Virus record (IMG/VR): IMGVR_UViG_3300025162_000016
Coordinates: 1 to 64,000 of that record
Direction: 5' to 3' (one strand)
Length of the DNA: 64,000 bases
Position numbers and translations under genes: made by a program
The notes under the pieces: model-generated
The model's input: the letters and a program-made list of their open reading frames with translations, nothing else
Database searches by the model: none
Told to the model about the DNA's origin: nothing
Shown here: positions 3,079 through 52,525 of the stretch, piece after piece
Layout: each line of letters begins with the position of its first letter
Numbering within the stretch: the stretch's first letter is position 1

Positions 3079-4470
3079 ATGCATATCATTACACCGTATA
3101 ATCCGTGGGCTCCTAAAAAGAAAAAAACTTGGCAGGAAGAGTTGTGGGAACAGCAAACCATTGCGGAGGCTGAAGCAAGAATGTTAGCAGAAGCTAGTAG
3201 CAGGACATTACCCAATAATTCTCCTAATACTTCAATGGCAACGGTTGGACCAATGGCAAATACTATGGCAGGCGGTGGCGGTAAACCCGTTTATGCATTT
3301 TTTAGCGCCGGTTCAGACGTGGTAAATTTCGATCGGAGTCCTGCTAGTGGAGATGGCCCAGTCACGGTCAATTTTATAAATTTAACTACAACTCCTCAGT
3401 TCGATTCATATAAATGGAGATTTAGTGATAATACTACTAGTACGGATGTAAATCCGGTTCATATATTTCAAAGCGGAAGTACTAATTCAACCATTTATAT
3501 CGCATCGTTGGAAGTAAGTAATTCTGTAACCGGTGCGCCGGGTGGAAGAAGTCCAGATGTTTTTATTGTGGTAGGAGTTCCTAGTGTAACTGCCAGTTAT
3601 ACGTATACAACTACATCCAAGGTAGCGCCTTTCTCGGCGTCGTTTACTAATACTTCGATTAATACAAGTCAAACAAAAACGACTTCGTATGTTTGGATAA
3701 TCAAAAACGACAATAATACATACACGTCTACGGCGACCGATTTTGAGGTTAGAATTGATAGTGGAAGTGTTACCGCATCGCTCGGAATGACTGGATCGTA
3801 TGGATTAACTAGTTTGACTAATTCAATGTTTAAGGCGGCAGCACCCACATTATTAGTATCCTACACCGTGGTCACTTCGTCTAAATATGCTCCCGCTAAT
3901 GTAACGTTATCAAGTTCATATAGCTATACCGGAATCGGAACTCTTAGTGGACTCTGGCGTGAAGGAGAGTATCAGGAAAATGGCACGGAATATGTGGTTG
4001 GATATCCCGGTGCAAAAGTTATTGGGCCGGAAGTTTTCAATACGAAATCGATTTCGGGCGGTGATGGAAAATTCACCTCATCATTAGCAATTACTGAGTC
4101 TATATACGGAATTACCGCTTTCTATACTCAGAGTTTCCAGCTTAAATTGCCAACGTTGGAACTGTCATTCGTCACTCGTTCATTTGGTAACGGTGGAATA
4201 GAGAATTCTTATATGGAGCCGGTTTCAATGTCGTACACTTCGAGTATCGTTACGGAAGGTATGTATGGGGCGAATTACACATTCCTTTGGGATTTCGGTG
4301 CGGCAAGTTTCACAAACTCTCAAGGAGTTTATGCTGGGACTGCAACAACTCAAGGACCGCATTTCCGATCTGATTATGCTCCCGGTTCATACACGGCATC
4401 ACTGGAAGTTACATCGAGCATTTATGGATTGTCGGTGAGATCAACTCAAAGTTTCGTTGTCGGATCTTAA
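3079..4470 (+). CDS. PKD/Ig-like domain Ser/Thr-rich protein
   Basis: WRFSDNTTSTDVNPVHIF and FLWDFG PKD-like motifs. Confidence 0.6.
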   Translation: MHIITPYNPWAPKKKKTWQEELWEQQTIAEAEARMLAEASSRTLPNNSPNTSMATVGPMANTMAGGGGKPVYAFFSAGSDVVNFDRSPASGDGPVTVNFINLTTTPQFDSYKWRFSDNTTSTDVNPVHIFQSGSTNSTIYIASLEVSNSVTGAPGGRSPDVFIVVGVPSVTASYTYTTTSKVAPFSASFTNTSINTSQTKTTSYVWIIKNDNNTYTSTATDFEVRIDSGSVTASLGMTGSYGLTSLTNSMFKAAAPTLLVSYTVVTSSKYAPANVTLSSSYSYTGIGTLSGLWREGEYQENGTEYVVGYPGAKVIGPEVFNTKSISGGDGKFTSSLAITESIYGITAFYTQSFQLKLPTLELSFVTRSFGNGGIENSYMEPVSMSYTSSIVTEGMYGANYTFLWDFGAASFTNSQGVYAGTATTQGPHFRSDYAPGSYTASLEVTSSIYGLSVRSTQSFVVGS

Positions 4471-4499
4471 TTTAAACACTCATTATAAAATCAAAGACA

Positions 4500-4531
4500 A
4501 GGCGTTAGTAAAATAACGCCTTTTCTTTTTT
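4500..4531 (+). terminator. Rho-independent terminator
   Basis: AGGCGTTA/TAACGCCT stem followed by a T tract. Confidence 0.7.
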
Positions 4532-4552
4532 GTAACATAATCGTAACATAGA
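4531..4552 (+). promoter_or_regulatory. Pho-box-like direct repeat
   Basis: GTAACAT at 4532 and 4543 (11-bp period) upstream of the porin-pstS pair. Confidence 0.55.
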
Positions 4553-4601
4553 TTCATCAATTTCGTTTGCGGTTCTTCATAGTTATTTGCAAATTAAAAT
4601 T

Positions 4602-5288
4602 ATGATGAAAAATCTAAAAGTATATGTTTATGTCGCCGCCCTGATCATGGTCGGTGTTTTTAATGTTAATGCTCAAACTAATGTTGTATCAACGGGTTCC
4701 ACAAATAAACCTGTACATAAAACATTTAAAACCTTTGATTTGAGTAATTTCGTCTTTACAGTTGAAAACGAGTTCCGTGCTAAAGACACGGGCACCTCCT
4801 TCTTCTATGAACATAATGATATTCAAGCTAAATATCTTTTGATAGACAAATATTTTGATATCTTCACTGATTATCGACTTATTTTTAAAAACAGTGCCGA
4901 AGGTAATAATTGGAAAAATCAAAGTATGTTTCTTGAAGGCTTTAATATAAAATATCCCGAACAAACGTGGGGTAAAATTAACCTCCGTCAACGACTTGAA
5001 ATTGGACTGAACCATGCTCCTACAAAAGACACTTATCAGTGGAATGTGTTTCCCAAATATAATACCCCATGGAAACTTACTAAATATGAAATCAATCCAT
5101 TCGTAGCCGATGAATCCTTCTTTGACACCCAGCAATCTATGGGCTTTGTAAAAAATCGAGTCTATGCTGGTATAGATTATAAGTTTACTCCCAAAATCAA
5201 AGGTGGTACTTGGTACTACTATGAAACCGCTGCTCATTCATCATCAACCGCAAATGTCCTCGTTACCCAGATTAAATTCGAATTTTAA
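4602..5288 (+). CDS. Outer-membrane beta-barrel protein, DUF2490-like
   Basis: Signal peptide; RQRLE and NRVYAG motifs; C-terminal Phe (QIKFEF). Confidence 0.6.
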   Translation: MMKNLKVYVYVAALIMVGVFNVNAQTNVVSTGSTNKPVHKTFKTFDLSNFVFTVENEFRAKDTGTSFFYEHNDIQAKYLLIDKYFDIFTDYRLIFKNSAEGNNWKNQSMFLEGFNIKYPEQTWGKINLRQRLEIGLNHAPTKDTYQWNVFPKYNTPWKLTKYEINPFVADESFFDTQQSMGFVKNRVYAGIDYKFTPKIKGGTWYYYETAAHSSSTANVLVTQIKFEF

Positions 5289-5294
5289 ATTAAT

Positions 5295-6170
5295 ATGAAA
5301 TATCTTTTTATAAGTGCTATTCTCAGTCTGTTAATGGTAGGTTGTAATAAATCTAATAACATCGTGACAACCCCAACCACTACCATCCAAGTAAAAGGCT
5401 CAGATACAATGGTTAATCTGGCTCAAGCATGGGCAGAAGAATATGTAAAAACAAATCCTGCCATCAATGTGGAGGTTTGTGGCGGCGGGTCTGGTGTTGG
5501 TATTGCTGCCCTCGAAAAGGGAATCATTGATATAGCGAATAGTAGCCGTAATATGAAACCCGACGAAATTGATGCTACTAAAAAAATAACAGGTAAGTTA
5601 CCAGTGGAGTTCGTAGTCGGTTATGACGCTCTTGGTGTATATGTTCATATTGATAATCCCATTAATGAAATTACCATCGAACAACTCGCCCAAATCTATG
5701 TGGCAAATGGTAAAATTAATAAATGGTCGGATATTGGTATCAAAATTCCCAATGGAGAAGATAACATTGTCCTCGTCAATAGACAATCTAGTTCGGGAAC
5801 ATATGAGTTCTTCAGAGAACATGTTCTAAACAAAAAAGACTTCCGCCTCGGTTCGAGGGATATGAATGGTTCAAAAGAAGTGGTTGAATTAGTTTCATTT
5901 ACAAAAGCCGCTATCGGCTATAGTGGTATGGGGTATAATATACCGGGAAAAGTAAAAATGTTGAAAATAGCTAAAGCTGCCGGTATCCCATCCGTCGAAC
6001 CTACAATGATAAATGCATTAAATAAATCATACCCTCTATCTCGTTCACTATTATGTTATACTCTAGGAGAACCCGCTGGTGAACTGAAAAAATATCTTGA
6101 TTGGTGCGTATCTCCTCCCGGTCAAAAAATAGTAGAACAAACGGGATATGTTCCACTCCCAATTAAATGA
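5295..6170 (+). CDS. pstS: Phosphate ABC transporter substrate-binding lipoprotein
   Basis: KGSDTM, GGGSGVG, DIANSSR, RQSSSGTYEFF, YPLSR motifs; lipobox MVGC. Confidence 0.95.
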   Translation: MKYLFISAILSLLMVGCNKSNNIVTTPTTTIQVKGSDTMVNLAQAWAEEYVKTNPAINVEVCGGGSGVGIAALEKGIIDIANSSRNMKPDEIDATKKITGKLPVEFVVGYDALGVYVHIDNPINEITIEQLAQIYVANGKINKWSDIGIKIPNGEDNIVLVNRQSSSGTYEFFREHVLNKKDFRLGSRDMNGSKEVVELVSFTKAAIGYSGMGYNIPGKVKMLKIAKAAGIPSVEPTMINALNKSYPLSRSLLCYTLGEPAGELKKYLDWCVSPPGQKIVEQTGYVPLPIK

Positions 6171-7499: not shown

Positions 7500-8709
7500 A
7501 AGAAATCCCTTTCCTTTAGGTGAGGGATGAATTTCGGAATATAATTAATAATTTTTTGATGTTTCGTATTTCTCAATCATATGTATAAGTAGAAAATGAA
7601 ATTTACTTATAAATATAGAATGTTTCCGACAAAAACCCAACAATCCATTCTAAATGGACAGTTGGAAACTTGTAGATTTCTTTATAATCATTTACTTGAA
7701 ATTAGGAAAAATGCATGGGAAAAAGAAAAAAAATCAATGTCCTGTTATGATACCCAAAATCTAATTCCTAAATTAAAAGAAGAATTTCCTCAACTCAAAT
7801 CTGTTTATTCACAAGTTCTCCAAAACGTAAATGTAAGAATTGATTTAGCATATCAAGGATTTTTTAGAAGATTGAAAAGTAATGAAAAATCTGGATATCC
7901 ACGCTTTAAAGGAAAAGGTAGATATAAATCCATTTGTTATTCACAATATGGAAATGGTTGTAAATTAGAAAAAAATAAATTATCTATTTCTAAAGTAGGA
8001 GATGTTTTCATTAAATTGCATAGACCAATTGAAGGTACACCGAAAACAGTTACTATAATAAAACAACCGACAGGTAAATGGTTCGTTTGTATTTCTTGTC
8101 AAGATGTTTCCAAAAAAATAAAGAATTTTCCCAAAACAAATAAAGAGTGTGGAATTGATGTTGGAATAACTTCGTTTGCTACTTTTGATAATGGTAATAA
8201 AATTGAAAATCCTCATTTTTTTGAAACCGAGGAAAAACAGTTATCAAAAGCACAAAATAAGGAAAAGTGGAAAGCGGTAAAAAGAATACATGAGAGGATT
8301 GGAAATAAGAGACATGAATTTCTTCATAAAATAACGAATGATATTCTTAAACAATATGATTTCATATCTATCGAAGATATTGATGTAAATTCTATTATAA
8401 GAAAAAGATGGAATAAGAAGCGGGTATATGATGTAGCGTGGAGTAATTTTGCAAACATACTTTCTCATAAAGCTGAAAATGCTGATAAGATTGTAGTAAA
8501 AATAAATCCGGCATATACTAGTCAGACATGTAGTGATTGCGGAACGAGAACAGTTATGGAAGAAAAGGATAGAATTTATAATTGTTCTTGTTGTGGGATG
8601 GTAAAAGATAGGGACGTGAATGCTGCAATAAACATTTTGAGATTGGGAACACAATCTCACGTTATTATATAACGAAGAAGCCCCTGCCTTTAGGCAGGGG
8701 AGTGTTCAC
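7500..8709 (+). mobile_element. IS200/IS605-family tnpB-only element
   Basis: Left-end hairpin ATCCCT..AGGGAT plus GAATT near 7505; right-end hairpin CCCCTGCCT/AGGCAGGGG (8681-8700) ending TTCAC at 8709. Confidence 0.8.
7596..8672 (+). CDS. tnpB: RNA-guided endonuclease TnpB (IS605 OrfB type)
   Basis: YKYRMFPT HTH; RuvC GIDVG, IEDI, DRDVNAA; CSDC/CSCC zinc finger. Confidence 0.92.
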   Translation: MKFTYKYRMFPTKTQQSILNGQLETCRFLYNHLLEIRKNAWEKEKKSMSCYDTQNLIPKLKEEFPQLKSVYSQVLQNVNVRIDLAYQGFFRRLKSNEKSGYPRFKGKGRYKSICYSQYGNGCKLEKNKLSISKVGDVFIKLHRPIEGTPKTVTIIKQPTGKWFVCISCQDVSKKIKNFPKTNKECGIDVGITSFATFDNGNKIENPHFFETEEKQLSKAQNKEKWKAVKRIHERIGNKRHEFLHKITNDILKQYDFISIEDIDVNSIIRKRWNKKRVYDVAWSNFANILSHKAENADKIVVKINPAYTSQTCSDCGTRTVMEEKDRIYNCSCCGMVKDRDVNAAINILRLGTQSHVII

Positions 8710-8724
8710 ATGCTATATATCATT

Positions 8725-9150
8725 ATGAAAAAGATATTCCATATACTTCTAGTCAGTTTAACCGTGTTTATATTAGCCGGTTGCACCACTGCTTTACAGT
8801 CAGATAAAATAATATCAATTAAAACTCGTTGTTTTGGGGTTATAATTGAAACCTCATCGATGTCTGCCAACAGTGTTCCAACAGTAAAGCTTGGATTCAT
8901 AAGTCAAGTAGTTCAATTAATTCCTACATCTACGAATGTTTTATATGCTCCAAATTATATGGACACTTTCGATCTAGGTCAGGGTATGAGTCCATTTAGC
9001 ACTACTATATCCGAAGATACCGGGACCGGTAATGTAATGTTAGATCCAGGTACCGCCACCATAATTACTACTAATAAAATGGGATTAGCTACCACTAATC
9101 ACGCTCCTTATAAATTAGGAGCAAGACTTCGCTCGCCTAAGCTGTTATAG
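8725..9150 (+). CDS. Lipoprotein of unknown function
   Basis: MKKIFHILLVSLTVFILAGC lipobox; stop codon lies inside the terminal CRISPR repeat. Confidence 0.65.
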   Translation: MKKIFHILLVSLTVFILAGCTTALQSDKIISIKTRCFGVIIETSSMSANSVPTVKLGFISQVVQLIPTSTNVLYAPNYMDTFDLGQGMSPFSTTISEDTGTGNVMLDPGTATIITTNKMGLATTNHAPYKLGARLRSPKLL

Positions 9151-9612
9151 TAACTGGTCTGTTCCAGCACTTCACCTACTGGTGCGGCGGTTGGGCATGC
9201 CGACAACAAGCGGAGGTGATATAGTAACTGGTCTGTTCCAGCACTTCACCCAAAGCAAGATTTTTATTCGCTAAAGAACAGTGTGGAGGTGATATAGTAA
9301 CTGGTCTGTTCCAGCACTTCACCCTAATATGGGCGGTCCCGCTGGGGTATCCTATGGGGTGATATAGTAACTGGTCTGTTCCAGCACTTCACCCTAATTG
9401 CATTTCCTTTTTCTCGGTATCGAACCTACGGTGATATAGTAACTGGTCTGTTCCAGCACTTCACCCATCTATGAAAGAACGCATAGTAATGAAGTTAGCG
9501 AAAGGTGATATAGTAACTGGTCTGTTCCAGCACTTCACCACGGCGTGCGCCATTTAAGGAATCCCTTAGTTTCGCCGGTGATATAGTAACTGGTCTGTTC
9601 CAGCACTTCACC
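9141..9612 (-). CRISPR. CRISPR array: 7 repeats of 36 bp, 6 spacers of 34-38 bp; no cas gene in window
   Basis: Repeat (minus strand) GGTGAAGTGCTGGAACAGACCAGTTACTATATCACC at 9141 (2 mismatches), 9215, 9288, 9358, 9430, 9504, 9577; spacers 38, 37, 34, 36, 38, 37 bp; degenerate repeat at left and promoter at right give minus orientation. Confidence 0.97.
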
Positions 9613-9668
9613 TGTGTCCCTCGTAACTATCGTATTATCAAAGAACTATGTATCAATTTGCGAGCGGT

Positions 9669-9697
9669 AGTGTATTCTATCGCCCTCGATTTGTCAA
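9669..9697 (-). promoter_or_regulatory. Array leader promoter
   Basis: Minus strand TTGACA-N17-TACACT; predicted +1 near 9662, about 50 nt before the first repeat. Confidence 0.8.
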
Positions 9698-9858
9698 CAT
9701 CAAATATCATATTTCGTAAGTTCCACATTATCAGCGAGTTACAAGTTGCGAGCGGCTATGGTATATTTGACACCACCTAACCGCTCGCAAATTAACATAA
9801 AAGTCTCATATGAGAAATCCAAAAATTGTAGACGTTTTATTTTAACCGGCATATATAT

Positions 9859-10320
9859 ATGCAGATGATTAAACTAAAAAAACTTATCGAGACCCGAGGT
9901 CTGGAAACGCAGAATGATTATTCTCGGCAAGAAAGCATTGAACTCACTGGACCTGAAGAAACCGATATTGATTATTATGACGATTTAAATAGAATGGAAA
10001 AAGAATCTGGAATTAATATTCTCAGTAACAAAGAATTGAATACTTTAGCGGTTCAAGACGAAAAGCTGGTCGGAGCCCTCTATGTTTCGATGCAGAATGA
10101 CGAATTTTCCTTTGATGTTATTGTCGATAAATTAGCTAGAGGACAAGGAATTGGAGCTAAACTTATTGATACCGCCCTTTCGCAATATCGAGAGATGAAA
10201 AATGATATGAGATTAACGTTGAAATTAGATGTGGTCAATCAATGGGTCGAAAAATATCTTCTAAAAAAAGGACTAAAAATTGTGGGAAAATACGGTACTC
10301 ATACAATAATGACAATTTAA
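9859..10320 (+). CDS. GNAT-family acetyltransferase with MIKLKKLIE tag
   Basis: VDKLARGQGIGAKLI acetyl-CoA binding motif; likely start 9865. Confidence 0.75.
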   Translation: MQMIKLKKLIETRGLETQNDYSRQESIELTGPEETDIDYYDDLNRMEKESGINILSNKELNTLAVQDEKLVGALYVSMQNDEFSFDVIVDKLARGQGIGAKLIDTALSQYREMKNDMRLTLKLDVVNQWVEKYLLKKGLKIVGKYGTHTIMTI

Positions 10321-10435
10321 TTTTTCTTGTTATTTGTAGTTGACAGAAACGACAATGTGTGTTATCAATAAAAAAAGTTTAATTGTTCCTCGTGGAACAT
10401 CTCCACGAGGAATCATATGATATATATTATAACAT

Positions 10436-10981
10436 ATGATTAGATTAAAAAATATAGTAAATGGAATATTAGCCGAGGAGGAAAAAAGTTCGGAGGATAC
10501 GGTTGCGAATAATAAAGGATATAATATAAAAAATATTTATCATGGTACAACCGAGAAATTTAATGTATTCAAGTTTGATACATTAAAAAATGTAAAAGCA
10601 TCCGATACAGATAAGGTTATATATGCTACAGATTCCGAGGAAGAAGCTAAAATCGCCGGTAGTCCTGATAGCAGTCGATCTAAGGTGATGAAATTATATG
10701 GGAAATTAAAAAATCCTATGGTGGTTGATGCTAAAGGTACAGAAAAAAATAAAAGTTTTGGAACAATTGGTTATAAAAAATTAATACAAATGGCTAAAAG
10801 TAGGAATCATGACGGTGCCATTATAAAAAATGTTATCGATTTTGGTAATACTCCACAGACGACATACATATTTTTTGATACAAAGGCAGTTAAACTCGCC
10901 GGAGAAACTAAAGATAATAGCGGCAATTTAATTCCTTTATCACAGCGATTTAATTCAACCGTAGATGATTTGCGGTTTTGA
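10436..10981 (+). CDS. ADP-ribosyltransferase-like protein (ART of polyvalent-protein type)
   Basis: IYHGT..FNVF, Y.T, LKNP and HDGAII motifs; paralogue of 30841..31380. Confidence 0.55.
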   Translation: MIRLKNIVNGILAEEEKSSEDTVANNKGYNIKNIYHGTTEKFNVFKFDTLKNVKASDTDKVIYATDSEEEAKIAGSPDSSRSKVMKLYGKLKNPMVVDAKGTEKNKSFGTIGYKKLIQMAKSRNHDGAIIKNVIDFGNTPQTTYIFFDTKAVKLAGETKDNSGNLIPLSQRFNSTVDDLRF

Positions 10982-11010: not shown

Positions 11011-11079
11011 ATTAAACATTTTAAGAGAAATATAGAAAAATATTGTAATTTGCGGAAAGTTGGTTATATTTATAACCAT

Positions 11080-11649
11080 ATGAAACTATCGAAATGGGCA
11101 AAATTGCAAGGAATAAGTTACAGAACAGCATGGTCTTGGTTTAAGAATAACACATTGCCTATTAAATCTTATCAAACTCCAACTGGAACTATTATAGTAG
11201 ATGACTCGTTGGATGTCAAAGAAAATAATAATGAAGTTGATATTTACTGTAGAGTTAGTTCCTCTAATAAAAAATTGGACTTAGACAATCAACTTAAATT
11301 ATGTGAAGAATATTGTATTTCTAATGGATACAAAATTAGAAAATCACTAAAAGAAATTGCATCGGGAATGAATGATAATCGACCAAGATTGAATTTAATT
11401 TTGGACAATCCATCAAATAAATTAGTAGTCCTTTATAAAGACAGATTAACAAGATTTGGATTTAATTATATAGAAAAACTATTAAAATCAAAAAAGTGTG
11501 AGTTGATAGTAATAAATCAAAACAAAACTGAGGAAGAGGACTTATTAAAAGACTTCATTGCTATTATTACATCGTTCTGTTGTAGAATGTATGGTGCGAG
11601 AAGAGGACAATCAAAAGCATTACGTATGAAACAGGAATTGAAAACATGA
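11080..11649 (+). CDS. tnpA: IS607 transposase (MerR-like HTH plus serine recombinase)
   Basis: MKLSKWAK..GISYRTAW HTH; YCRVSS; KDRLTRFGF. Confidence 0.93.
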   Translation: MKLSKWAKLQGISYRTAWSWFKNNTLPIKSYQTPTGTIIVDDSLDVKENNNEVDIYCRVSSSNKKLDLDNQLKLCEEYCISNGYKIRKSLKEIASGMNDNRPRLNLILDNPSNKLVVLYKDRLTRFGFNYIEKLLKSKKCELIVINQNKTEEEDLLKDFIAIITSFCCRMYGARRGQSKALRMKQELKT

Positions 11650-12890
11650 TTAGGAGTTCCAAACATTCTACAAAATTTACAAATCTTCGGAAAATGAAGA
11701 CATTGGCGTTGTTTATCTCGGAATATAGAAAAATAGGACAAGAAATTGTTGACATAATATGGAATAATGGATATGAAGAATTTAATATTCAGGAGGATAA
11801 ACTAAATTGTCCGAAATATCTCGATTATAAAAAATTCAACATAAATACATCCTTATCGGCTCGGGCATTAAGTTCTTTGGTTACACAGATATGTTTTAGT
11901 TTATCATCGGCAACAAAAAAACGAAAACAAATATTATATGCAAAGAATAAATTAATATCTGAAGGAAAGCCGCTTGGTAGAATTGATAAGATTCTCGATA
12001 AATATAAATTAATTAAACCAAATTTTTCAAACATCAATCCAGAATTGAGTTCAAAATGTTGCGATATTAAGGATGGAAATTCTTTTAATTATTTTTTAAG
12101 AATAAAATCAATAGGAAAAATATACGGATGTATTAAAATACCTATAAAAAATACAAAAGTATCATTAAAATGGTTAAAAAATGGAAAATTATTAAATTCA
12201 TTTTCTATTGGTCAGCAATATATTTCCCTACGATTTAATATTACAAATAAAAATGTAAATGTTGGAACTAAAATAATTGGAATTGATCAAGGACTGAAAG
12301 ATGTCGCAACATTATCAGACCATCAAATAACACCAAAATATGATATTCACGGGCATTCACTTGAATCAATTATAAATACGATATCAAAGAAGAAACGAGG
12401 TTCAGATGCATTTATTAAATCGCAGGAACATAGAAAAAATTTTATTAATTGGGCAATTAACCAATTAAATTTTAATGACGCCAAAGAAATTCGATTGGAA
12501 AAAATATGGAATATAGGATATAAACGGCGTACATCAAGAAGACTTTCACACTGGACGAATACGTTGATACGAGATAAGATTAAACGGAAATGCGAAGAGC
12601 TGGAGGTTCCAGTTATCGAGCAAGATTCCTCTTATCGCTCTCAACGATGTTCTTGTTGCGGATTAGTACGAAAGGCCAATAGAAATGGTAAAATATATAA
12701 ATGTAAAACTTGTAAATTTGAATCAGATGCTGATTATAATGCAAGTTTAAATCATATTGTAGATTTACCCGAAATCAGTTGGCAGTTTCGCAATCAACGA
12801 AATAATCTAAAATGTGGTTTTTACTGGAAGCCAAGTGGATTATTTAGTATTGATGGAGTGGAGCTTAGAGTCCCACTTTCTACCGATTAA
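11646..12890 (+). CDS. tnpB: IS607-associated TnpB nuclease, RuvC triad intact
   Basis: IGIDQG, IRLEKI, DADYNAS; CSCC/CKTC zinc finger. Confidence 0.88.
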   Translation: MIRSSKHSTKFTNLRKMKTLALFISEYRKIGQEIVDIIWNNGYEEFNIQEDKLNCPKYLDYKKFNINTSLSARALSSLVTQICFSLSSATKKRKQILYAKNKLISEGKPLGRIDKILDKYKLIKPNFSNINPELSSKCCDIKDGNSFNYFLRIKSIGKIYGCIKIPIKNTKVSLKWLKNGKLLNSFSIGQQYISLRFNITNKNVNVGTKIIGIDQGLKDVATLSDHQITPKYDIHGHSLESIINTISKKKRGSDAFIKSQEHRKNFINWAINQLNFNDAKEIRLEKIWNIGYKRRTSRRLSHWTNTLIRDKIKRKCEELEVPVIEQDSSYRSQRCSCCGLVRKANRNGKIYKCKTCKFESDADYNASLNHIVDLPEISWQFRNQRNNLKCGFYWKPSGLFSIDGVELRVPLSTD

Positions 12891-12986: not shown

Positions 12987-13022
12987 GGTGAAGTGCTGGA
13001 ACAGACCAGTCACTATATCACC
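12987..13022 (+). CRISPR. Solitary CRISPR repeat, inverted relative to the array
   Basis: GGTGAAGTGCTGGAACAGACCAGTCACTATATCACC; 35/36 identical to the array repeat. Confidence 0.95.
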
Positions 13023-13291: not shown

Positions 13292-13370
13292 GCGAACGTG
13301 GTACAGTGGCCGACTACGCCTTCTCTACACGGAGGAATCATCGCAGGTTCGAATCCTGCCGTTCGCACCA
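13292..13370 (+). tRNA. tRNA-Val(UAC) with atypical C33 and 7-nt variable region
   Basis: Acceptor GCGAACG/CGTTCGC-A-CCA; anticodon stem CCTTC/GGAGG, loop TCTACAC; T arm GCAGG-TTCGAAT-CCTGC. Confidence 0.8.
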
Positions 13371-13380
13371 GCTTAGTTGT

Positions 13381-13454
13381 CGGTTATAGGTGTTGCGGAA
13401 GCATACAAGTTTTGGGAACTTGTGGGGAGCGTTCAACTCGCTCATAGCCGACCA
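13381..13454 (+). tRNA. tRNA-Pro(UGG)
   Basis: CGGTTAT/ATAGCCG-A-CCA; CAAGT-TTTGGGA-ACTTG; GAGCG-TTCAACT-CGCTC. Confidence 0.9.
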
Positions 13455-13464
13455 AATTTTTGAT

Positions 13465-13535
13465 ATAGTTATCTTATAACGGTAATACGCTAGTTTTGCA
13501 GACTAGAAATCGGGGTTCGGCTCCACGGAATTTAA
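13465..13535 (+). pseudogene. Degenerate tRNA (anticodon TGC, Ala-like)
   Basis: Intact anticodon arm CTAGT-TTTGCAG-ACTAG and GGTTCG T loop, but no acceptor stem or CCA. Confidence 0.5.
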
Positions 13536-13537
13536 AT

Positions 13538-13609
13538 TGCAGTAAGGTGTAAGAGTGCATGTGACTCTCATAAGGTCACGGGCCGGTGCGAATCCGGAAT
13601 CTGCATCCA
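13538..13609 (+). tRNA. tRNA with CAU anticodon (Met or Ile2), partly mismatched stems
   Basis: TGACT-CTCATAA-GGTCA arm; TGCAG/CTGCA acceptor with 2 inner mismatches; T loop TGCGAAT; CCA end. Confidence 0.6.
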
Positions 13610-17636: not shown

Positions 17637-18544
17637 AATGTTAAAATTTTTGGAGATTTATCGATTCCTTTTTTAAAACTTTTCCAATCAGATTCCCAAA
17701 TATATTTTATATTATATCCCATAGATTTTAATTTTTTAAATCTATCAAATGTATGATTATACAATTCTCCAAATGTCTTTTTAGATAAATCATTTTTATT
17801 TTCCAAATTATATTTTTTAGGATTTCCATGCCAATAATCACCTAGAAATTCATATATTGTATTATCTTCAATTCCATCCACTATAAACGATTTTATAAAA
17901 ATATTTCTATTAGTGATATTTATATAATTTAAAAATTCGGTTTCTGGTTTAGAAATTCGATGACCCGTGATTTTTTTAACTCCACAATGTTTACATCCTT
18001 TTCCAGATAAATGATTTCCTGGAGTTTGCCAGAACTCCTCATGAATTGGACAAATTATTTTTAATTTAGTTATAGAATTTATATAATTTATTTTGGAATA
18101 ATTATAAAAATTATTGTGAATTTTATTTGACGAATTGACAAATTCATCTTTTGTTAATTTAAGCGTTTTTCCACATTTTTGGCATCCTCTACCCATGAGA
18201 TGTTTATGTGGAGTTTGTAAAAATTCATCGTGATTGGGACAAATTATTTTCACTCTTGTATTAATATTTTTATAATTTACTTTGGAATAATTATAAAAAT
18301 TATTGTGAATTTTATTTGACGAATTGATAAATTCATTTTTTGTTAATTTAAGCGTTTTTCCACATTGTTGACATCCTCTATTATTTAAATGACCATTTGG
18401 TCTTTGTAAAAATTCGCCATGTTTTTTACATATTATTATAACTTTTTTATTAGATTTTTCATAAATTGTTTTTGAATAGTCATATTTATCACCATGAACT
18501 TTTCTTGCTTTTTCGATGAAATCAGTTGTTGTTAATTTTTCCAT
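17633..18544 (-). CDS. Free-standing homing endonuclease-like protein (three Zn-ribbon repeats plus PD-(D/E)XK/Vsr-like domain)
   Basis: Repeated IICPxHxEFxQxPxxHLxGxGCxxC; EFLGDYWHG; YIWESDW. Confidence 0.75.
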   Translation of the reverse strand: MEKLTTTDFIEKARKVHGDKYDYSKTIYEKSNKKVIIICKKHGEFLQRPNGHLNNRGCQQCGKTLKLTKNEFINSSNKIHNNFYNYSKVNYKNINTRVKIICPNHDEFLQTPHKHLMGRGCQKCGKTLKLTKDEFVNSSNKIHNNFYNYSKINYINSITKLKIICPIHEEFWQTPGNHLSGKGCKHCGVKKITGHRISKPETEFLNYINITNRNIFIKSFIVDGIEDNTIYEFLGDYWHGNPKKYNLENKNDLSKKTFGELYNHTFDRFKKLKSMGYNIKYIWESDWKSFKKGIDKSPKILTF

Positions 18545-41592: not shown

Positions 41593-42912
41593 ATGTTAAA
41601 GCAAATTCAACGCAATAATTTTCTTACGGTGCCATTTGTTGCTTCTAAAAAATGGAATTTACGTAATATTGATAATGAGGCTTTAGCTGTTATTGATGAT
41701 GAATACATTGCATTAGAATATGTAGATTATTATGGCAATCCTCTTCTTAATCGTGATTGTAACATAACGCTTGAACAGCAACGTAATAATAATGTTATTT
41801 TTGAAATAGGTAGAAAATCTACCGGAATTTTTTATCCAGATCAGGAAGAAAAAAATGATACTGGAACTTATATTCGACTGGTATATGATCAGACAAAATT
41901 AGCTTTTTATAATGAATATAAGAATCCTTTGAAAATTTTTGGGGTGGAGAATATTGATTTTGGTAATAGTAGAATGTTTCGATATATTGCAGATGAGTTT
42001 CGAATGTTTACTCTTCCAAAAGCATTTTTTGGAGATTCTATTAAAAAGAAAAGCGTATCCTTTATGGATAATGCATTGGATGATTATGTTCAAATAAATG
42101 ATGATGGATATGGAAATTTGATAGCTACAAAAAATCTTTTTTCTAAAATTCAAGAGGTTAGAAAGTTTTCAAATGCTTATAAAGAAGGAGATGCCGCAAA
42201 TGAATGTCCCCCAGTTGTGATTCCTACAACCACTACGACTACATCTACCACGTCTACTACATCTACGACTACTGCACCGACAACAACTACTACGACTACT
42301 ACAACTACTGAAGCTCCTCCACCAACAACTACTACAACAACCAGCACAACTAGCACTACCAGTACTACAAGCACAACATCAACAACCAGTACAACTACTG
42401 AAGCTCCTCCTCCACCAACAACAACAACTACTACGACTACTACAACTACTGAAGCTCCTCCTCCTCCAACAACAACAACTACTACGACTACTACAACTAC
42501 TGAAGCTCCTCCACCAACAACTACTACTACGACTACTACAACTACCGAAGCTCCTCCACCAACAACTACCACTACCACTACGACAACTAGTACCACATCA
42601 ACGACAACAGCGCCTCCTACATGTCCTGAATGTTCCACTTACTCCGCTACAACAGTATATTGTCCGAATACTGTTTTGTTATTCTCAACACAGGCTCAGT
42701 TCTGTCAAGATTTAAAAGATGCTTGGGGATTCGGAAGCGGTCATTCTGTTTTTATTTGGAAACCAATATATGATGGTATTAATGGAGCAACGGTTATTTC
42801 TAATCTTGCTACATTATGTGGAATGACGTTTACCCAAACATCCACTACATTGGGGAATACAACTTGTGAAATAACTCCTCCCGAAACAGAGTTTCGGTTT
42901 ACTGTGCCGTAA
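41593..42912 (+). CDS. Structural protein N-half fused to a mucin-like Thr/Pro repeat
   Basis: FGDSIKK..DDGYGNL then T-rich repeats and a Cys-containing tail. Confidence 0.65.
   Translation: MLKQIQRNNFLTVPFVASKKWNLRNIDNEALAVIDDEYIALEYVDYYGNPLLNRDCNITLEQQRNNNVIFEIGRKSTGIFYPDQEEKNDTGTYIRLVYDQTKLAFYNEYKNPLKIFGVENIDFGNSRMFRYIADEFRMFTLPKAFFGDSIKKKSVSFMDNALDDYVQINDDGYGNLIATKNLFSKIQEVRKFSNAYKEGDAANECPPVVIPTTTTTTSTTSTTSTTTAPTTTTTTTTTTEAPPPTTTTTTSTTSTTSTTSTTSTTSTTTEAPPPPTTTTTTTTTTTEAPPPPTTTTTTTTTTTEAPPPTTTTTTTTTTEAPPPTTTTTTTTTSTTSTTTAPPTCPECSTYSATTVYCPNTVLLFSTQAQFCQDLKDAWGFGSGHSVFIWKPIYDGINGATVISNLATLCGMTFTQTSTTLGNTTCEITPPETEFRFTVP
42226..42621 (+). repeat. Coding tandem repeat, (T)n-EAPPP x5 plus STT runs
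   Basis: ACN codon runs with five GAAGCTCCTCC units. Confidence 0.95.
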
Positions 42913-51303: not shown

Positions 51304-52525
51304 AAACTCCCCTACCCTAAAGGGATAGGGGCTTCTATGCTGTTCACAGCAAGAGATTGTCTTCCCAATCTCAAAATGTTTCTTGCCGCATTTATGTCTC
51401 TATCCATAGATAGACCACACGAACAATTGAAAACTCGATCTTTCAACTCCATTATCGTTCTCGTTCCACATTGGCTGCAAGTTTGACTAGTATAGGCAGG
51501 GTTGATTTTTATCAATATCTTATCAGCATATGCTGCTTTATAAGATATTATGTTTCCAAACATACTCCACGCTACATCATTTATCTGTTTACTACACCAT
51601 CTTTTCTTTAACAATTTATTTGTTTCAATATCTTCTATAAATATAAAATCATATCTGTTTAATATACCATTTGTTGTTTTGTGAAGAAAATCATTTCTCT
51701 TATTTACAATTCTCTCATGAATTCTTCTAGCAACTTTCCATTTTTTCTGTCTCTGTTTTTTTGCTAATTGCTTTTGCTCTTTCTCAAAAAATCGTGGATT
51801 GTTTATTTTAGTTCCATCATCAAAAGTGGCAAAAGATAGAATCCCAACATCTATTCCAGTTTCTTTACCTGTTCTTCTAAATTGTTTTTTATTATTTGGA
51901 ATATCGCAACAAGATATAGAAACGAACCATTTATTTGTTGGGGTTTTGGCTATGGTTATAGTTTTTGGAGTTCCAAATAATTTTCTATGTAATACAATAT
52001 CAACTTCTCCTACTTTTGATAATAATAATTTATTTTCTTTTATTTCGCACCCATTATTATATTGCGGGTAACAAATAGAAAAATATCTACCTTTTCCACG
52101 AAATCTAGGATATCCCGGAGTATCTCCATTTTTCAATCTTCTAAAAAATCCTTGGTATGCTAAATCAACTCTTATTGCTACATTTTGTAAACATTGAGAA
52201 TATACAGAAGTTAGTTGGGGATATGTTTCTTTTAAAATTGGTATTTGTTTGATTGAATCATAACAAGACACAGACTTCTTTTCTTTTTCCCAACTATTCT
52301 TTCTAATTTCAAGTAAATGATTATAGAGAAACCTACAAGTTTCCAACTGGTTATTCAGGATTGTCTCCTGTTTCTTTGTTGGATATATTCTGTATTTATA
52401 TGTAAGTTTCATTTTCTACATATATGTATATCAAAGAATGTGAAAACGTTGATTTATTTTGAATTATTTTTCTCTTGGTCGAATTCATCCCCAAGGCTAA
52501 AGCCGTTGGGGTTTTCTTCTCCCAA
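51300..52525 (-). mobile_element. IS200/IS605-family tnpB-only element
   Basis: Left-end hairpin 52489-52511 plus ATGAATT; right-end hairpin CCCCTATCCCT/AGGGTAGGGG ending TTCAC at 51300. Confidence 0.8.
51312..52412 (-). CDS. tnpB: RNA-guided endonuclease TnpB, close paralogue of 7596..8672
   Basis: GIDVG, FIEDI, DRDINAA; CSQC/CSC zinc finger. Confidence 0.92.
   Translation of the reverse strand: MKLTYKYRIYPTKKQETILNNQLETCRFLYNHLLEIRKNSWEKEKKSVSCYDSIKQIPILKETYPQLTSVYSQCLQNVAIRVDLAYQGFFRRLKNGDTPGYPRFRGKGRYFSICYPQYNNGCEIKENKLLLSKVGEVDIVLHRKLFGTPKTITIAKTPTNKWFVSISCCDIPNNKKQFRRTGKETGIDVGILSFATFDDGTKINNPRFFEKEQKQLAKKQRQKKWKVARRIHERIVNKRNDFLHKTTNGILNRYDFIFIEDIETNKLLKKRWCSKQINDVAWSMFGNIISYKAAYADKILIKINPAYTSQTCSQCGTRTIMELKDRVFNCSCGLSMDRDINAARNILRLGRQSLAVNSIEAPIPLG

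Follow-up and report, generated by a model that had tools for sequence, protein, structure and literature searches.

A probable satellite CRISPR array of a Cas12-Cas3 system in a jumbo phage genome

Array A1 and its leader

We analysed a CRISPR array, named A1, which lies in a 64,000-nucleotide (nt) stretch of viral DNA (the window) that makes up bases 1-64000 of the 368,758-bp IMG/VR record IMGVR_UViG_3300025162_000016. The record has direct terminal repeats and is estimated to be 100% complete, and the baseplate and virion proteins encoded in the genome confirmed that it belongs to a phage. Metagenomes from lake water and freshwater, dating from 2017 and 2020, contained the same phage with identical flanks. 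Genetic code 11 fits the phage, and an alternative code was rejected, as the totals of stop-free frames showed no recoding. On the plus strand the 36-nt repeat of A1 reads GGTGATATAGTAACTGGTCTGTTCCAGCACTTCACC, and its seven copies, six of which are identical, start at positions 9141, 9215, 9288, 9358, 9430, 9504, and 9577. The spacers between them are 38, 37, 34, 36, 38, and 37 nt long, with no two alike. Direct repeats of 23-55 nt and unique spacers of similar length, which generally characterize CRISPR arrays, are thus both present, and a preliminary description, made from the sequence of the window alone, was right to regard the locus as a genuine phage CRISPR array with a 36-nt repeat and spacers of 34-38 nt.

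One prominent feature of the locus is a leader of about 193 nt, which is common to all four arrays of the phage genome and stands at the end opposite to the degenerate repeat (Table 1). The degenerate copy occupies the leader-distal end in 4/4 arrays of the genome and also in L017, one of the metagenomic relatives described below. A1 shows the layout generally expected of a CRISPR array, in that an AT-rich, promoter-bearing leader flanks one end and the degenerate repeat closes the other. Its leader is identical at 179 of 193 positions (93%) to the one that separates cas3 from the main array A2, and is 60-66% identical to the leaders of the relatives L015 and L017, whose Cas12 proteins are only about 57% identical to that of the phage. 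The predicted promoter TTGACA-17 nt-TACACT, which reads from 9697 to 9669 on the minus strand, supports the earlier proposal that the array has a promoter of its own, and its −35 hexamer TTGACA was unchanged in 5/5 leaders compared. Three copies of the motif TTGCGAGC(GG)/(CC)GCTCGCAA were invariant across the leaders, including those of the relatives with 57%-identical Cas12, and one copy adjoins the −10 hexamer on its 3' side, near where transcription is expected to start. Judged from this conservation, the motifs are likely candidate operator sites for a regulator. In L023 and L041, two relatives with an array placed immediately behind cas12 in the same orientation, the sense of the CRISPR RNA (crRNA) agrees with that inferred for A1. 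The leader, the promoter, and the terminator-like hairpin together indicate that A1 is a self-contained minus-strand transcription unit, able to feed a distant effector in trans.

Table 1. Positions of the arrays, cas genes, leader elements, and solitary repeats in the window and in the phage genome
Feature	Position	Strand	Description or basis
CRISPR array A1	window 9141..9612	minus	7 copies of the 36-nt repeat; 6 different spacers
Degenerate A1 repeat, trailer end (GCTGTT..., 2 mismatches)	window 9141..9176	minus	repeat census
Conserved leader of A1	window 9613..9805	minus	193 nt; leader comparison
Predicted sigma-70-type promoter in leader, TTGACA-17 nt-TACACT	window 9669..9697	minus	promoter search
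Motif TTGCGAGC(GG)/(CC)GCTCGCAA, 3 copies	window 9658-9667, 9746-9755, 9781-9790		leader comparison
Terminator-like hairpin and T-run, directly after last repeat	window 9112..9137	minus	terminator search
cas3, 758 amino acids (aa)	genome 298524-300800	minus	directly beside A2
cas12, 1003 aa	genome 300917-303928	divergent from cas3	TnpB-type RuvC
Array A2 (largest, cas-adjacent)	genome 297365-298344		14 copies; repeat census
Array A3	genome 331573-332059		7 copies; repeat census
Array A4	genome 333064-333910		12 copies; repeat census
Solitary repeat, 1 mismatch	window 12987-13022	plus	97 nt after IS607-type TnpB, upstream of tRNA cluster
Solitary repeats elsewhere	genome 229885, 279857, 282075, 282812, 304154, 304355, 307083, 307172		repeat census
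Solitary repeats elsewhere	genome 309895, 310032, 311268, 311735, 314770, 330454, 350540		repeat census

The cas12-cas3 module and its arrays

A census of the whole phage genome, in which up to 7 mismatches were allowed, found the repeat 56 times, about 16 of them as solitary copies and the remainder within four arrays. The repeat of A1 is identical to that of A2. The cas genes lie about 290 kb from A1. The preliminary description had called the array Cas-less. This holds for the 64 kb of the window, which contain no cas gene, the single copies of cas3 and cas12 being located at 298.5-303.9 kb; it is wrong for the genome, where cas3 and the gene for a 1003-aa Cas12 stand beside a 14-repeat array with the identical repeat and the 93%-identical leader. 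The same description had named, as the outcome that would overturn its view, a well-known subtype with cas genes elsewhere in the phage or host. Scanning the rest of the phage revealed the cas genes, and the system that they form is not a well-known subtype.

All six spacers of A1 differ from those of the other three arrays, so that A1 adds guides and is no mere duplication. Within the other arrays, spacer 8 of A2 equals spacer 9 (297910-298019), and spacers 3-4 of A4 equal spacers 10-11 (333100-333729); these internal duplications suggest that the arrays grow by recombination, not by acquisition. A3 contains one spacer of 50 nt (331901-331950). Profiles of Cas1, Cas2, and Cas4 matched nothing in the complete phage genome, and as Cas1 and Cas2 are lacking, gain of spacers by the phage alone is unlikely. 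Two contigs from lake water (run X3, window 9540) run from the repeat into TATAGATACCTGGTCTATAACTATTGTTAA, which is absent from this genome and may represent a different spacer of a co-occurring strain.

The product of cas3 was recognized by NCBIfam cas3_core (1e-29) together with an HD domain and by PADLOC Cas3c (1e-88), with the I-C and I-B models as the closest ones. It has the HD, GSGKT, and DEYH motifs, and the residues H67/D68, H123/H124, D214/H215, G285/K288/T289, and D399/E400 are invariant in seven homologues. Profiles of the Cascade components Cas5d and I-C-type Cas7 (Pfam Cas_Cas7) found nothing genome-wide; Cas8 and Cas6 were not searched.

The 1003-aa protein gave a weak match to a TnpB-type RuvC domain when scanned, and its catalytic triad D550/E796/D873 is invariant in the protein and six homologues. 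A profile built from these seven sequences was compared with the RuvC regions of known effectors, and matched Cas12X2 at 5e-24, Cas12o1/CasJ19 at 1e-22, Cas12f at 6e-6, and Cas12h1 at 0.011. It has all that is expected of a type V effector, being a single large protein whose RuvC domain is split and whose D-E-D triad is intact. With the Cas12o1/Cas12X group, only residues 742-889 (RuvC) align by sequence, so that full-length sequence similarity to this group is lacking, whereas the fold matches over the full length at 12-15% identity. When the AlphaFold model of the protein was searched with Foldseek, the full-length matches were led by Cas12X, Cas12X2, and Cas12o1 (E 1e-22 to 1e-21), followed by Cas12h1 (4e-18), Cas12b (7e-17), and Cas12i (1e-11); CasPhi and CasLambda reached only 5e-7 to 6e-6. 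Because its modelled fold and its RuvC profile match known Cas12 proteins, the 1003-aa protein is, on this evidence, a bona fide Cas12 of the Cas12b/h/o lineage.

In the region right behind the cas12 stop codon (genome 303946-305000; L010:7946-9000) a half-repeat, CATATCAGTTATTATATCACC, comes first. It is followed by two repeat units whose starts are 201 nt apart, with an identical 24-nt sequence in front of each. The region also has near-palindromic ATATCGGTA(T/A)CATACCAATAT sites, and then about five tandem units of about 49 nt with GGTATTTCACCAATTT.

Conservation of the module and comparison with known systems

In the minus-strand sense the repeat RNA is GGUGAAGUGCUGGAACAGACCAGUUACUAUAUCACC. 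Its minimum-free-energy fold pairs GGUGA with UCACC, AGUG with UACU, and CUGG with CCAG around the loop AACAGA (−13.0 kcal/mol, z = −2.9), reproducing every pair and the loop of the end-to-end hairpin drawn in the preliminary description. Covariation was examined in an alignment of 16 different versions of the repeat, taken from this phage and from three related metagenomic loci, where 89% of the cells pair and both sides are changed in 8 of the 13 pairs. Paired changes are seen among CUGG/CCAG, UUAG/CUAA, and ACCG/CGGU, and at the ends, where G1-C36 becomes A1-U36 and G2-C35 becomes U2-A35. The covariation score was matched by none of 500 shuffles, and every slid register collapsed. This covariation indicates that the hairpin is a selected feature. 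The repeat has no GAAAC-type end, as noted before, and no Rfam family, including the CRISPR direct-repeat families of that database, matched it.

Only seven close homologues of the Cas12 protein were found among 5.8 billion proteins, all of them metagenomic. A profile search of 1.84 billion cluster representatives yielded 355 relatives, 33 of them at E ≤ 1e-30, and a search for Cas12 relatives in IMG/VR returned only the phage's own fragment. Gene neighbourhoods were examined for 12 families, down to a profile E of 3e-46, and in 11 of the 12 cas3 was located immediately beside cas12, in either divergent or co-directional layout. As in phage DNA, the surroundings are mostly made up of numerous short genes that match no family. 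The exception, P0029, is a more distant relative without a cas3 neighbour; its match to the Cas12h model reaches 1.6e-18, and it carries an array of its own with a hairpinned 36-nt repeat. P0017, which like P0029 is an intermediate relative, also matches the Cas12h model. Related, fully hairpinned 36-nt repeats were present at the loci; close relatives have the form GTTGAAG...ATCAAC, another subclade has GTGGTAGT...GCCAC, and P0029 has GTCTAA...TTAGAC. In L014, which has the same Cas12 as L015, an IS607 element (resolvase and broken TnpB; 3340-5116) lies right after the first cas3-side repeat and appears to have interrupted or replaced the array.

Cas12h1 is taken to need no trans-activating crRNA (tracrRNA). 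Its mature crRNA, produced from a co-expressed array, contains the whole 36-nt repeat as one elongated stem-loop without a 5' flank, and the enzyme preferentially nicks the non-target strand (PMC11830025). The crRNA of Cas12o1 also contains a 36-nt repeat (PMC13717751), and another paper lists Cas12o among the tracrRNA-free effectors. The repeat length of 36 nt and the covarying end-to-end hairpin of the phage agree with the repeat form of type V-H, and the 36-nt repeat part reported for Cas12h1 and Cas12o1 explains the "unusual" repeat as a signature of this Cas12 lineage rather than of type VI-B. The likeness to type VI-B (Cas13b) seen in the preliminary description is probably that of a look-alike, convergent in form only: 36-nt repeats and GTTG...CAAC-like paired ends are shared, as the GTTGAAG...ATCAAC repeats of the relatives illustrate, but the repeat here co-occurs and covaries with cas12-cas3 loci, the predicted cognate effector is a RuvC-containing Cas12, and the spacers are 34-41 nt long.

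Among established subtypes, type V-H (Cas12h1) resembles the phage system in having a single RuvC effector of about 870-1000 aa, no adaptation module, and a 36-nt stem-loop repeat. The phage Cas12 is, however, only about 12% identical to Cas12h1 in structural alignments, and the phage system adds a Cas3 partner, phage encoding, and four arrays. The best matches in both sequence and fold are Cas12o1 (CasJ19/Cas12-2; PDB 8xca, 8wru) and Cas12X/Cas12X2 (PDB 8zqb, 8zqc), with template modelling (TM) scores of about 0.5, yet the sequence alignment is confined to the RuvC region, at 13-15% identity. No report of a Cas3 partner of Cas12o1 or Cas12X was found in the literature searched, the primary Cas12o1 paper being outside that search. 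CasPhi and CasLambda effectors are reported to process their own crRNAs. Like the system described here, CasPhi (Cas12j) and CasLambda are type V systems of huge phages without Cas1, Cas2, and Cas4 (PMC7162821 for the phage context), but their fold match is much weaker (TM 0.18-0.24), the effectors are of smaller size, and the literature searched names no Cas3 partner for either.

The closest precedent is a Cas12h variant, predicted to be active, which Altae-Tran et al. (2023, PNAS) found to be associated with Cas3; in that Cas3 the HD domain is active and the helicase complete, and the adaptation module has been lost (PMC10691335). The phage locus, with a Cas12h-lineage effector beside a Cas3 with intact HD and helicase motifs, has the same gene content and presumably belongs to the same clade. 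The published account comprises two sentences, without experiments, phage context, satellite arrays, or solitary repeats, the last three of which are found here. In the literature searched, no experimental study of a Cas12-Cas3 pairing was found, and this kind of pairing had been noted once before, computationally; judging from gene content, the phage locus would be a further member.

Function of A1 and alternative readings

On the basis of the identical repeat, the 93%-identical leader with its promoter, and the conserved cas12-cas3 module, we consider it probable that A1 acts in trans, as a satellite array, for a type V system encoded by the phage itself, which combines a Cas12 of the h/o/b lineage with Cas3. 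The precursor transcript would be cut by Cas12 itself, without a tracrRNA, into crRNAs in which, as reported for Cas12h1, a 5' stem-loop formed by the complete 36-nt repeat precedes the spacer. Guided by these, Cas12 would find competitor DNA flanked by a protospacer-adjacent motif (PAM), be it a phage, a plasmid, or a host locus, open an R-loop, and nick or cut the target. Cas3 would then load on the displaced or nicked strand and degrade the target processively.

Targets of the spacers were sought in several collections. None of the 36 spacers matched the phage genome outside the arrays, and self-targeting of the phage was accordingly rejected (0/36). By BLAST, no protospacer was found for A1 and A2 in 50,697 phage records or for A1 in 72,556 plasmids, and the window region itself had no match in either collection. 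Four window spacers searched in IMG/VR, and one GC-rich spacer searched in the genomes of GTDB, hit nothing but the array itself. As no protospacer was found, no PAM can be derived. The trailer-most, and thus oldest, spacers of A1 (9177-9214) and A2 (genome 297401-297439) have 63-67% G+C in a phage of 36% G+C, and may therefore originate in a high-GC target.

Several observations weigh against the assignment of A1 to a Cas12-Cas3 system of the phage. No protospacer was obtained for any spacer tested, whether in the phage's own genome, phages, plasmids, IMG/VR, or GTDB. Spacer length varies unusually across the arrays, with a range of 34-41 nt and a single case of 50 nt. The Cas12 protein has no Pfam match and no PADLOC hit at E ≤ 0.01, with the Cas12h models included, so that it lacks the recognition by these models that marks type V-H. 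Its AlphaFold model, built on a 7-sequence alignment, is of moderate confidence (mean predicted local distance difference test score 68). The putative physical or functional link between Cas12 and Cas3 is read from gene adjacency only. The runs that contain the phage are DNA only (lake water, 2017 and 2020), with contigs that break at the repeats, and expression, strand, and processing sites are inferred.

Of the other readings, the one that survives best, although we regard it as unlikely, takes A1 for an orphan remnant of the main array, left by duplication or rearrangement and no longer expressed or used. Adaptation genes and protospacers were indeed not found, and the wealth of TnpB and insertion sequence (IS) elements, along with collapsed units of a leader and a single repeat, implies that arrays in this genome rearrange and decay. 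Decay, however, is hard to reconcile with six perfect repeats out of seven, with six spacers that all differ from those of the other arrays, and with a leader that keeps its promoter and three operator-like motifs, invariant even where Cas12 is 57% identical.

Far less probable is that the arrays and solitary repeats are guide-RNA scaffolds for neighbouring TnpB nucleases. The genome contains 15 full-length TnpB genes, three of which lie in the window: at 7596-8672, within 11050-12890 as an IS607-type resolvase and TnpB pair, and at 51312-52412 on the minus strand. TnpB genes are found 0.5-1.5 kb from A1, A2, and A3, an IS605-type copy being 469 nt from the trailer end of A1, and the solitary repeat at 12987 follows the IS607 TnpB. 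This proximity loses weight when the 15 copies are seen to be spread over the genome with inconsistent orientation: at A1 gene and array converge, and at A2 the gene lies downstream and runs the same way as the array. The guide RNA of a TnpB is normally encoded on the strand of tnpB itself, at the 3' end of that gene, which also counts against such a role. In the relatives, moreover, the repeats covary with that of the phage and accompany cas12-cas3 loci without an adjacent TnpB, and in L014 the IS607 element interrupts the array and so looks like an invader. The earlier suggestion that A1 serves an uncharacterized effector such as a neighbouring TnpB was therefore correct as to the effector, a TnpB-derived Cas12, and failed as to the neighbour, given the number and varied orientation of the TnpB copies and the retention of the repeat with cas12-cas3.

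Just as improbable is a role in exploiting or jamming a CRISPR effector of the host, either as hijacking mini-arrays or as RNA anti-CRISPR decoys. Viral orphan mini-arrays and single repeat units of this kind are, like A1, located far from cas genes, and phage arrays and single repeats without adjacent cas genes do work in this way (PMC11656645); the many solitary units in the genome would also fit. Such elements copy the CRISPR of the host, however, whereas the repeats here copy the phage's own system, for which the phage encodes a matching effector module. A repeat identical or nearly identical to a host CRISPR repeat, as expected of mini-arrays, was not found: the repeat-family pattern had 0 matches in 185,579 species genomes, in an exact search that diverged host repeats would escape. 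In IMG/VR the repeat family occurred only in this phage's own fragments, and in metagenome contigs only in this phage and three small further contigs, two from the sample of L015 and one from another sample. Hijacking of a host effector, which the preliminary description had offered as one explanation, is thus unsupported, and the close effector homologues are all metagenomic.

The least probable reading, a type I system in which host-supplied Cascade works with Cas3 and the arrays while the Cas12-like gene is an unrelated neighbour, draws on the closeness of Cas3 to the I-C and I-B models and on documented phage type I variants with missing components (PMC7162821), but it conflicts with the adjacency of cas3 and cas12 in 11 of 12 diverged families in both layouts, with a repeat that lacks a type I-like 3' handle and has the 36-nt form of Cas12h1 and Cas12o1 crRNAs, and with the negative Cas5d and Cas7 profiles, the only two Cascade profiles searched.

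The solitary repeats were considered separately. All copies are in the sense of plus-strand genes, most are intergenic and upstream of open reading frames (ORFs), and several stand behind their own promoter or a full array leader. Full leaders precede the copies at 229885 and 282075, and the same arrangement follows cas12 in the relative L016; a leader with a single repeat would suit either an array that has collapsed or a unit for one guide. The copies at 307-315 kb include a subfamily with the pairing-preserving ends A1...U36 in place of G1-C36. Because of their plus sense, mostly intergenic positions, promoters or leaders, and compensatory A1-U36 ends, the solitary repeats might be working RNA elements rather than debris, either Cas12 binding or processing sites in the 5' leaders of phage transcripts or single-repeat guides, a doubtful proposal at present. 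The sequences that follow them have second genome copies in only two cases, and a targeting role for these sequences was unsupported; that at 304154, checked base by base, mismatches at the repeat-proximal end. A Pfam scan of the genes after solitary repeats or between arrays gave nothing informative (DUF932, GP88, DUF6927).

A related arrangement is present in L017, where the 5' leader of cas12 contains a repeat-spacer-repeat unit whose spacer is identical at 30 of 37 positions to codons of cas12 that lie about 230 nt downstream from its start, the latter placed by homologue alignment. The unit resembles cas-regulating RNAs known from other CRISPR types, and by this analogy could be such an RNA, acting in autoregulation. 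Upstream of the same cas12 lies a diverged duplicate of the cas12 N-terminus; the coordinates recorded for these L017 features are 4871-5180 and 5400-5436.

Other features of the window were recorded. Directly beyond the A1 leader (9859-10981) are genes for a GNAT acetyltransferase and an ART-PolyVal ADP-ribosyltransferase, and a weak ART-PolyVal match is also found upstream of cas3 in the relative L021. Three tRNA genes (Val-TAC, Pro-TGG, Met-CAT; 13292-13609) come just after the solitary repeat of the window. A 189-nt tandem duplication lies in an AT-rich stretch at 18020-18380, and a long array with a 9/45-nt period (ACTACAACT...; 42224-42589) lies in a 439-aa ORF, probably encoding a Thr/Pro-rich linker.

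An array that looked like an orphan thus led to a compact and rare phage system of one Cas12, one Cas3, and four arrays, without adaptation genes, in which a jumbo phage spreads its guides over several trans-acting arrays. If the solitary repeats are functional, the Cas12(-Cas3) system would regulate phage genes as well. The pairing joins an RNA-guided effector of class 2 with a shredding enzyme of class 1. Since a nick of the non-target strand, as made by Cas12h1, is the kind of substrate on which Cas3 loads, the pair could be a natural "nick then shred" device, and is of interest for genome editing by long deletions. Now that the locus and the leader are defined, along with the relatives and the sense of the crRNA, hybrid class 2/class 1 interference becomes directly testable.

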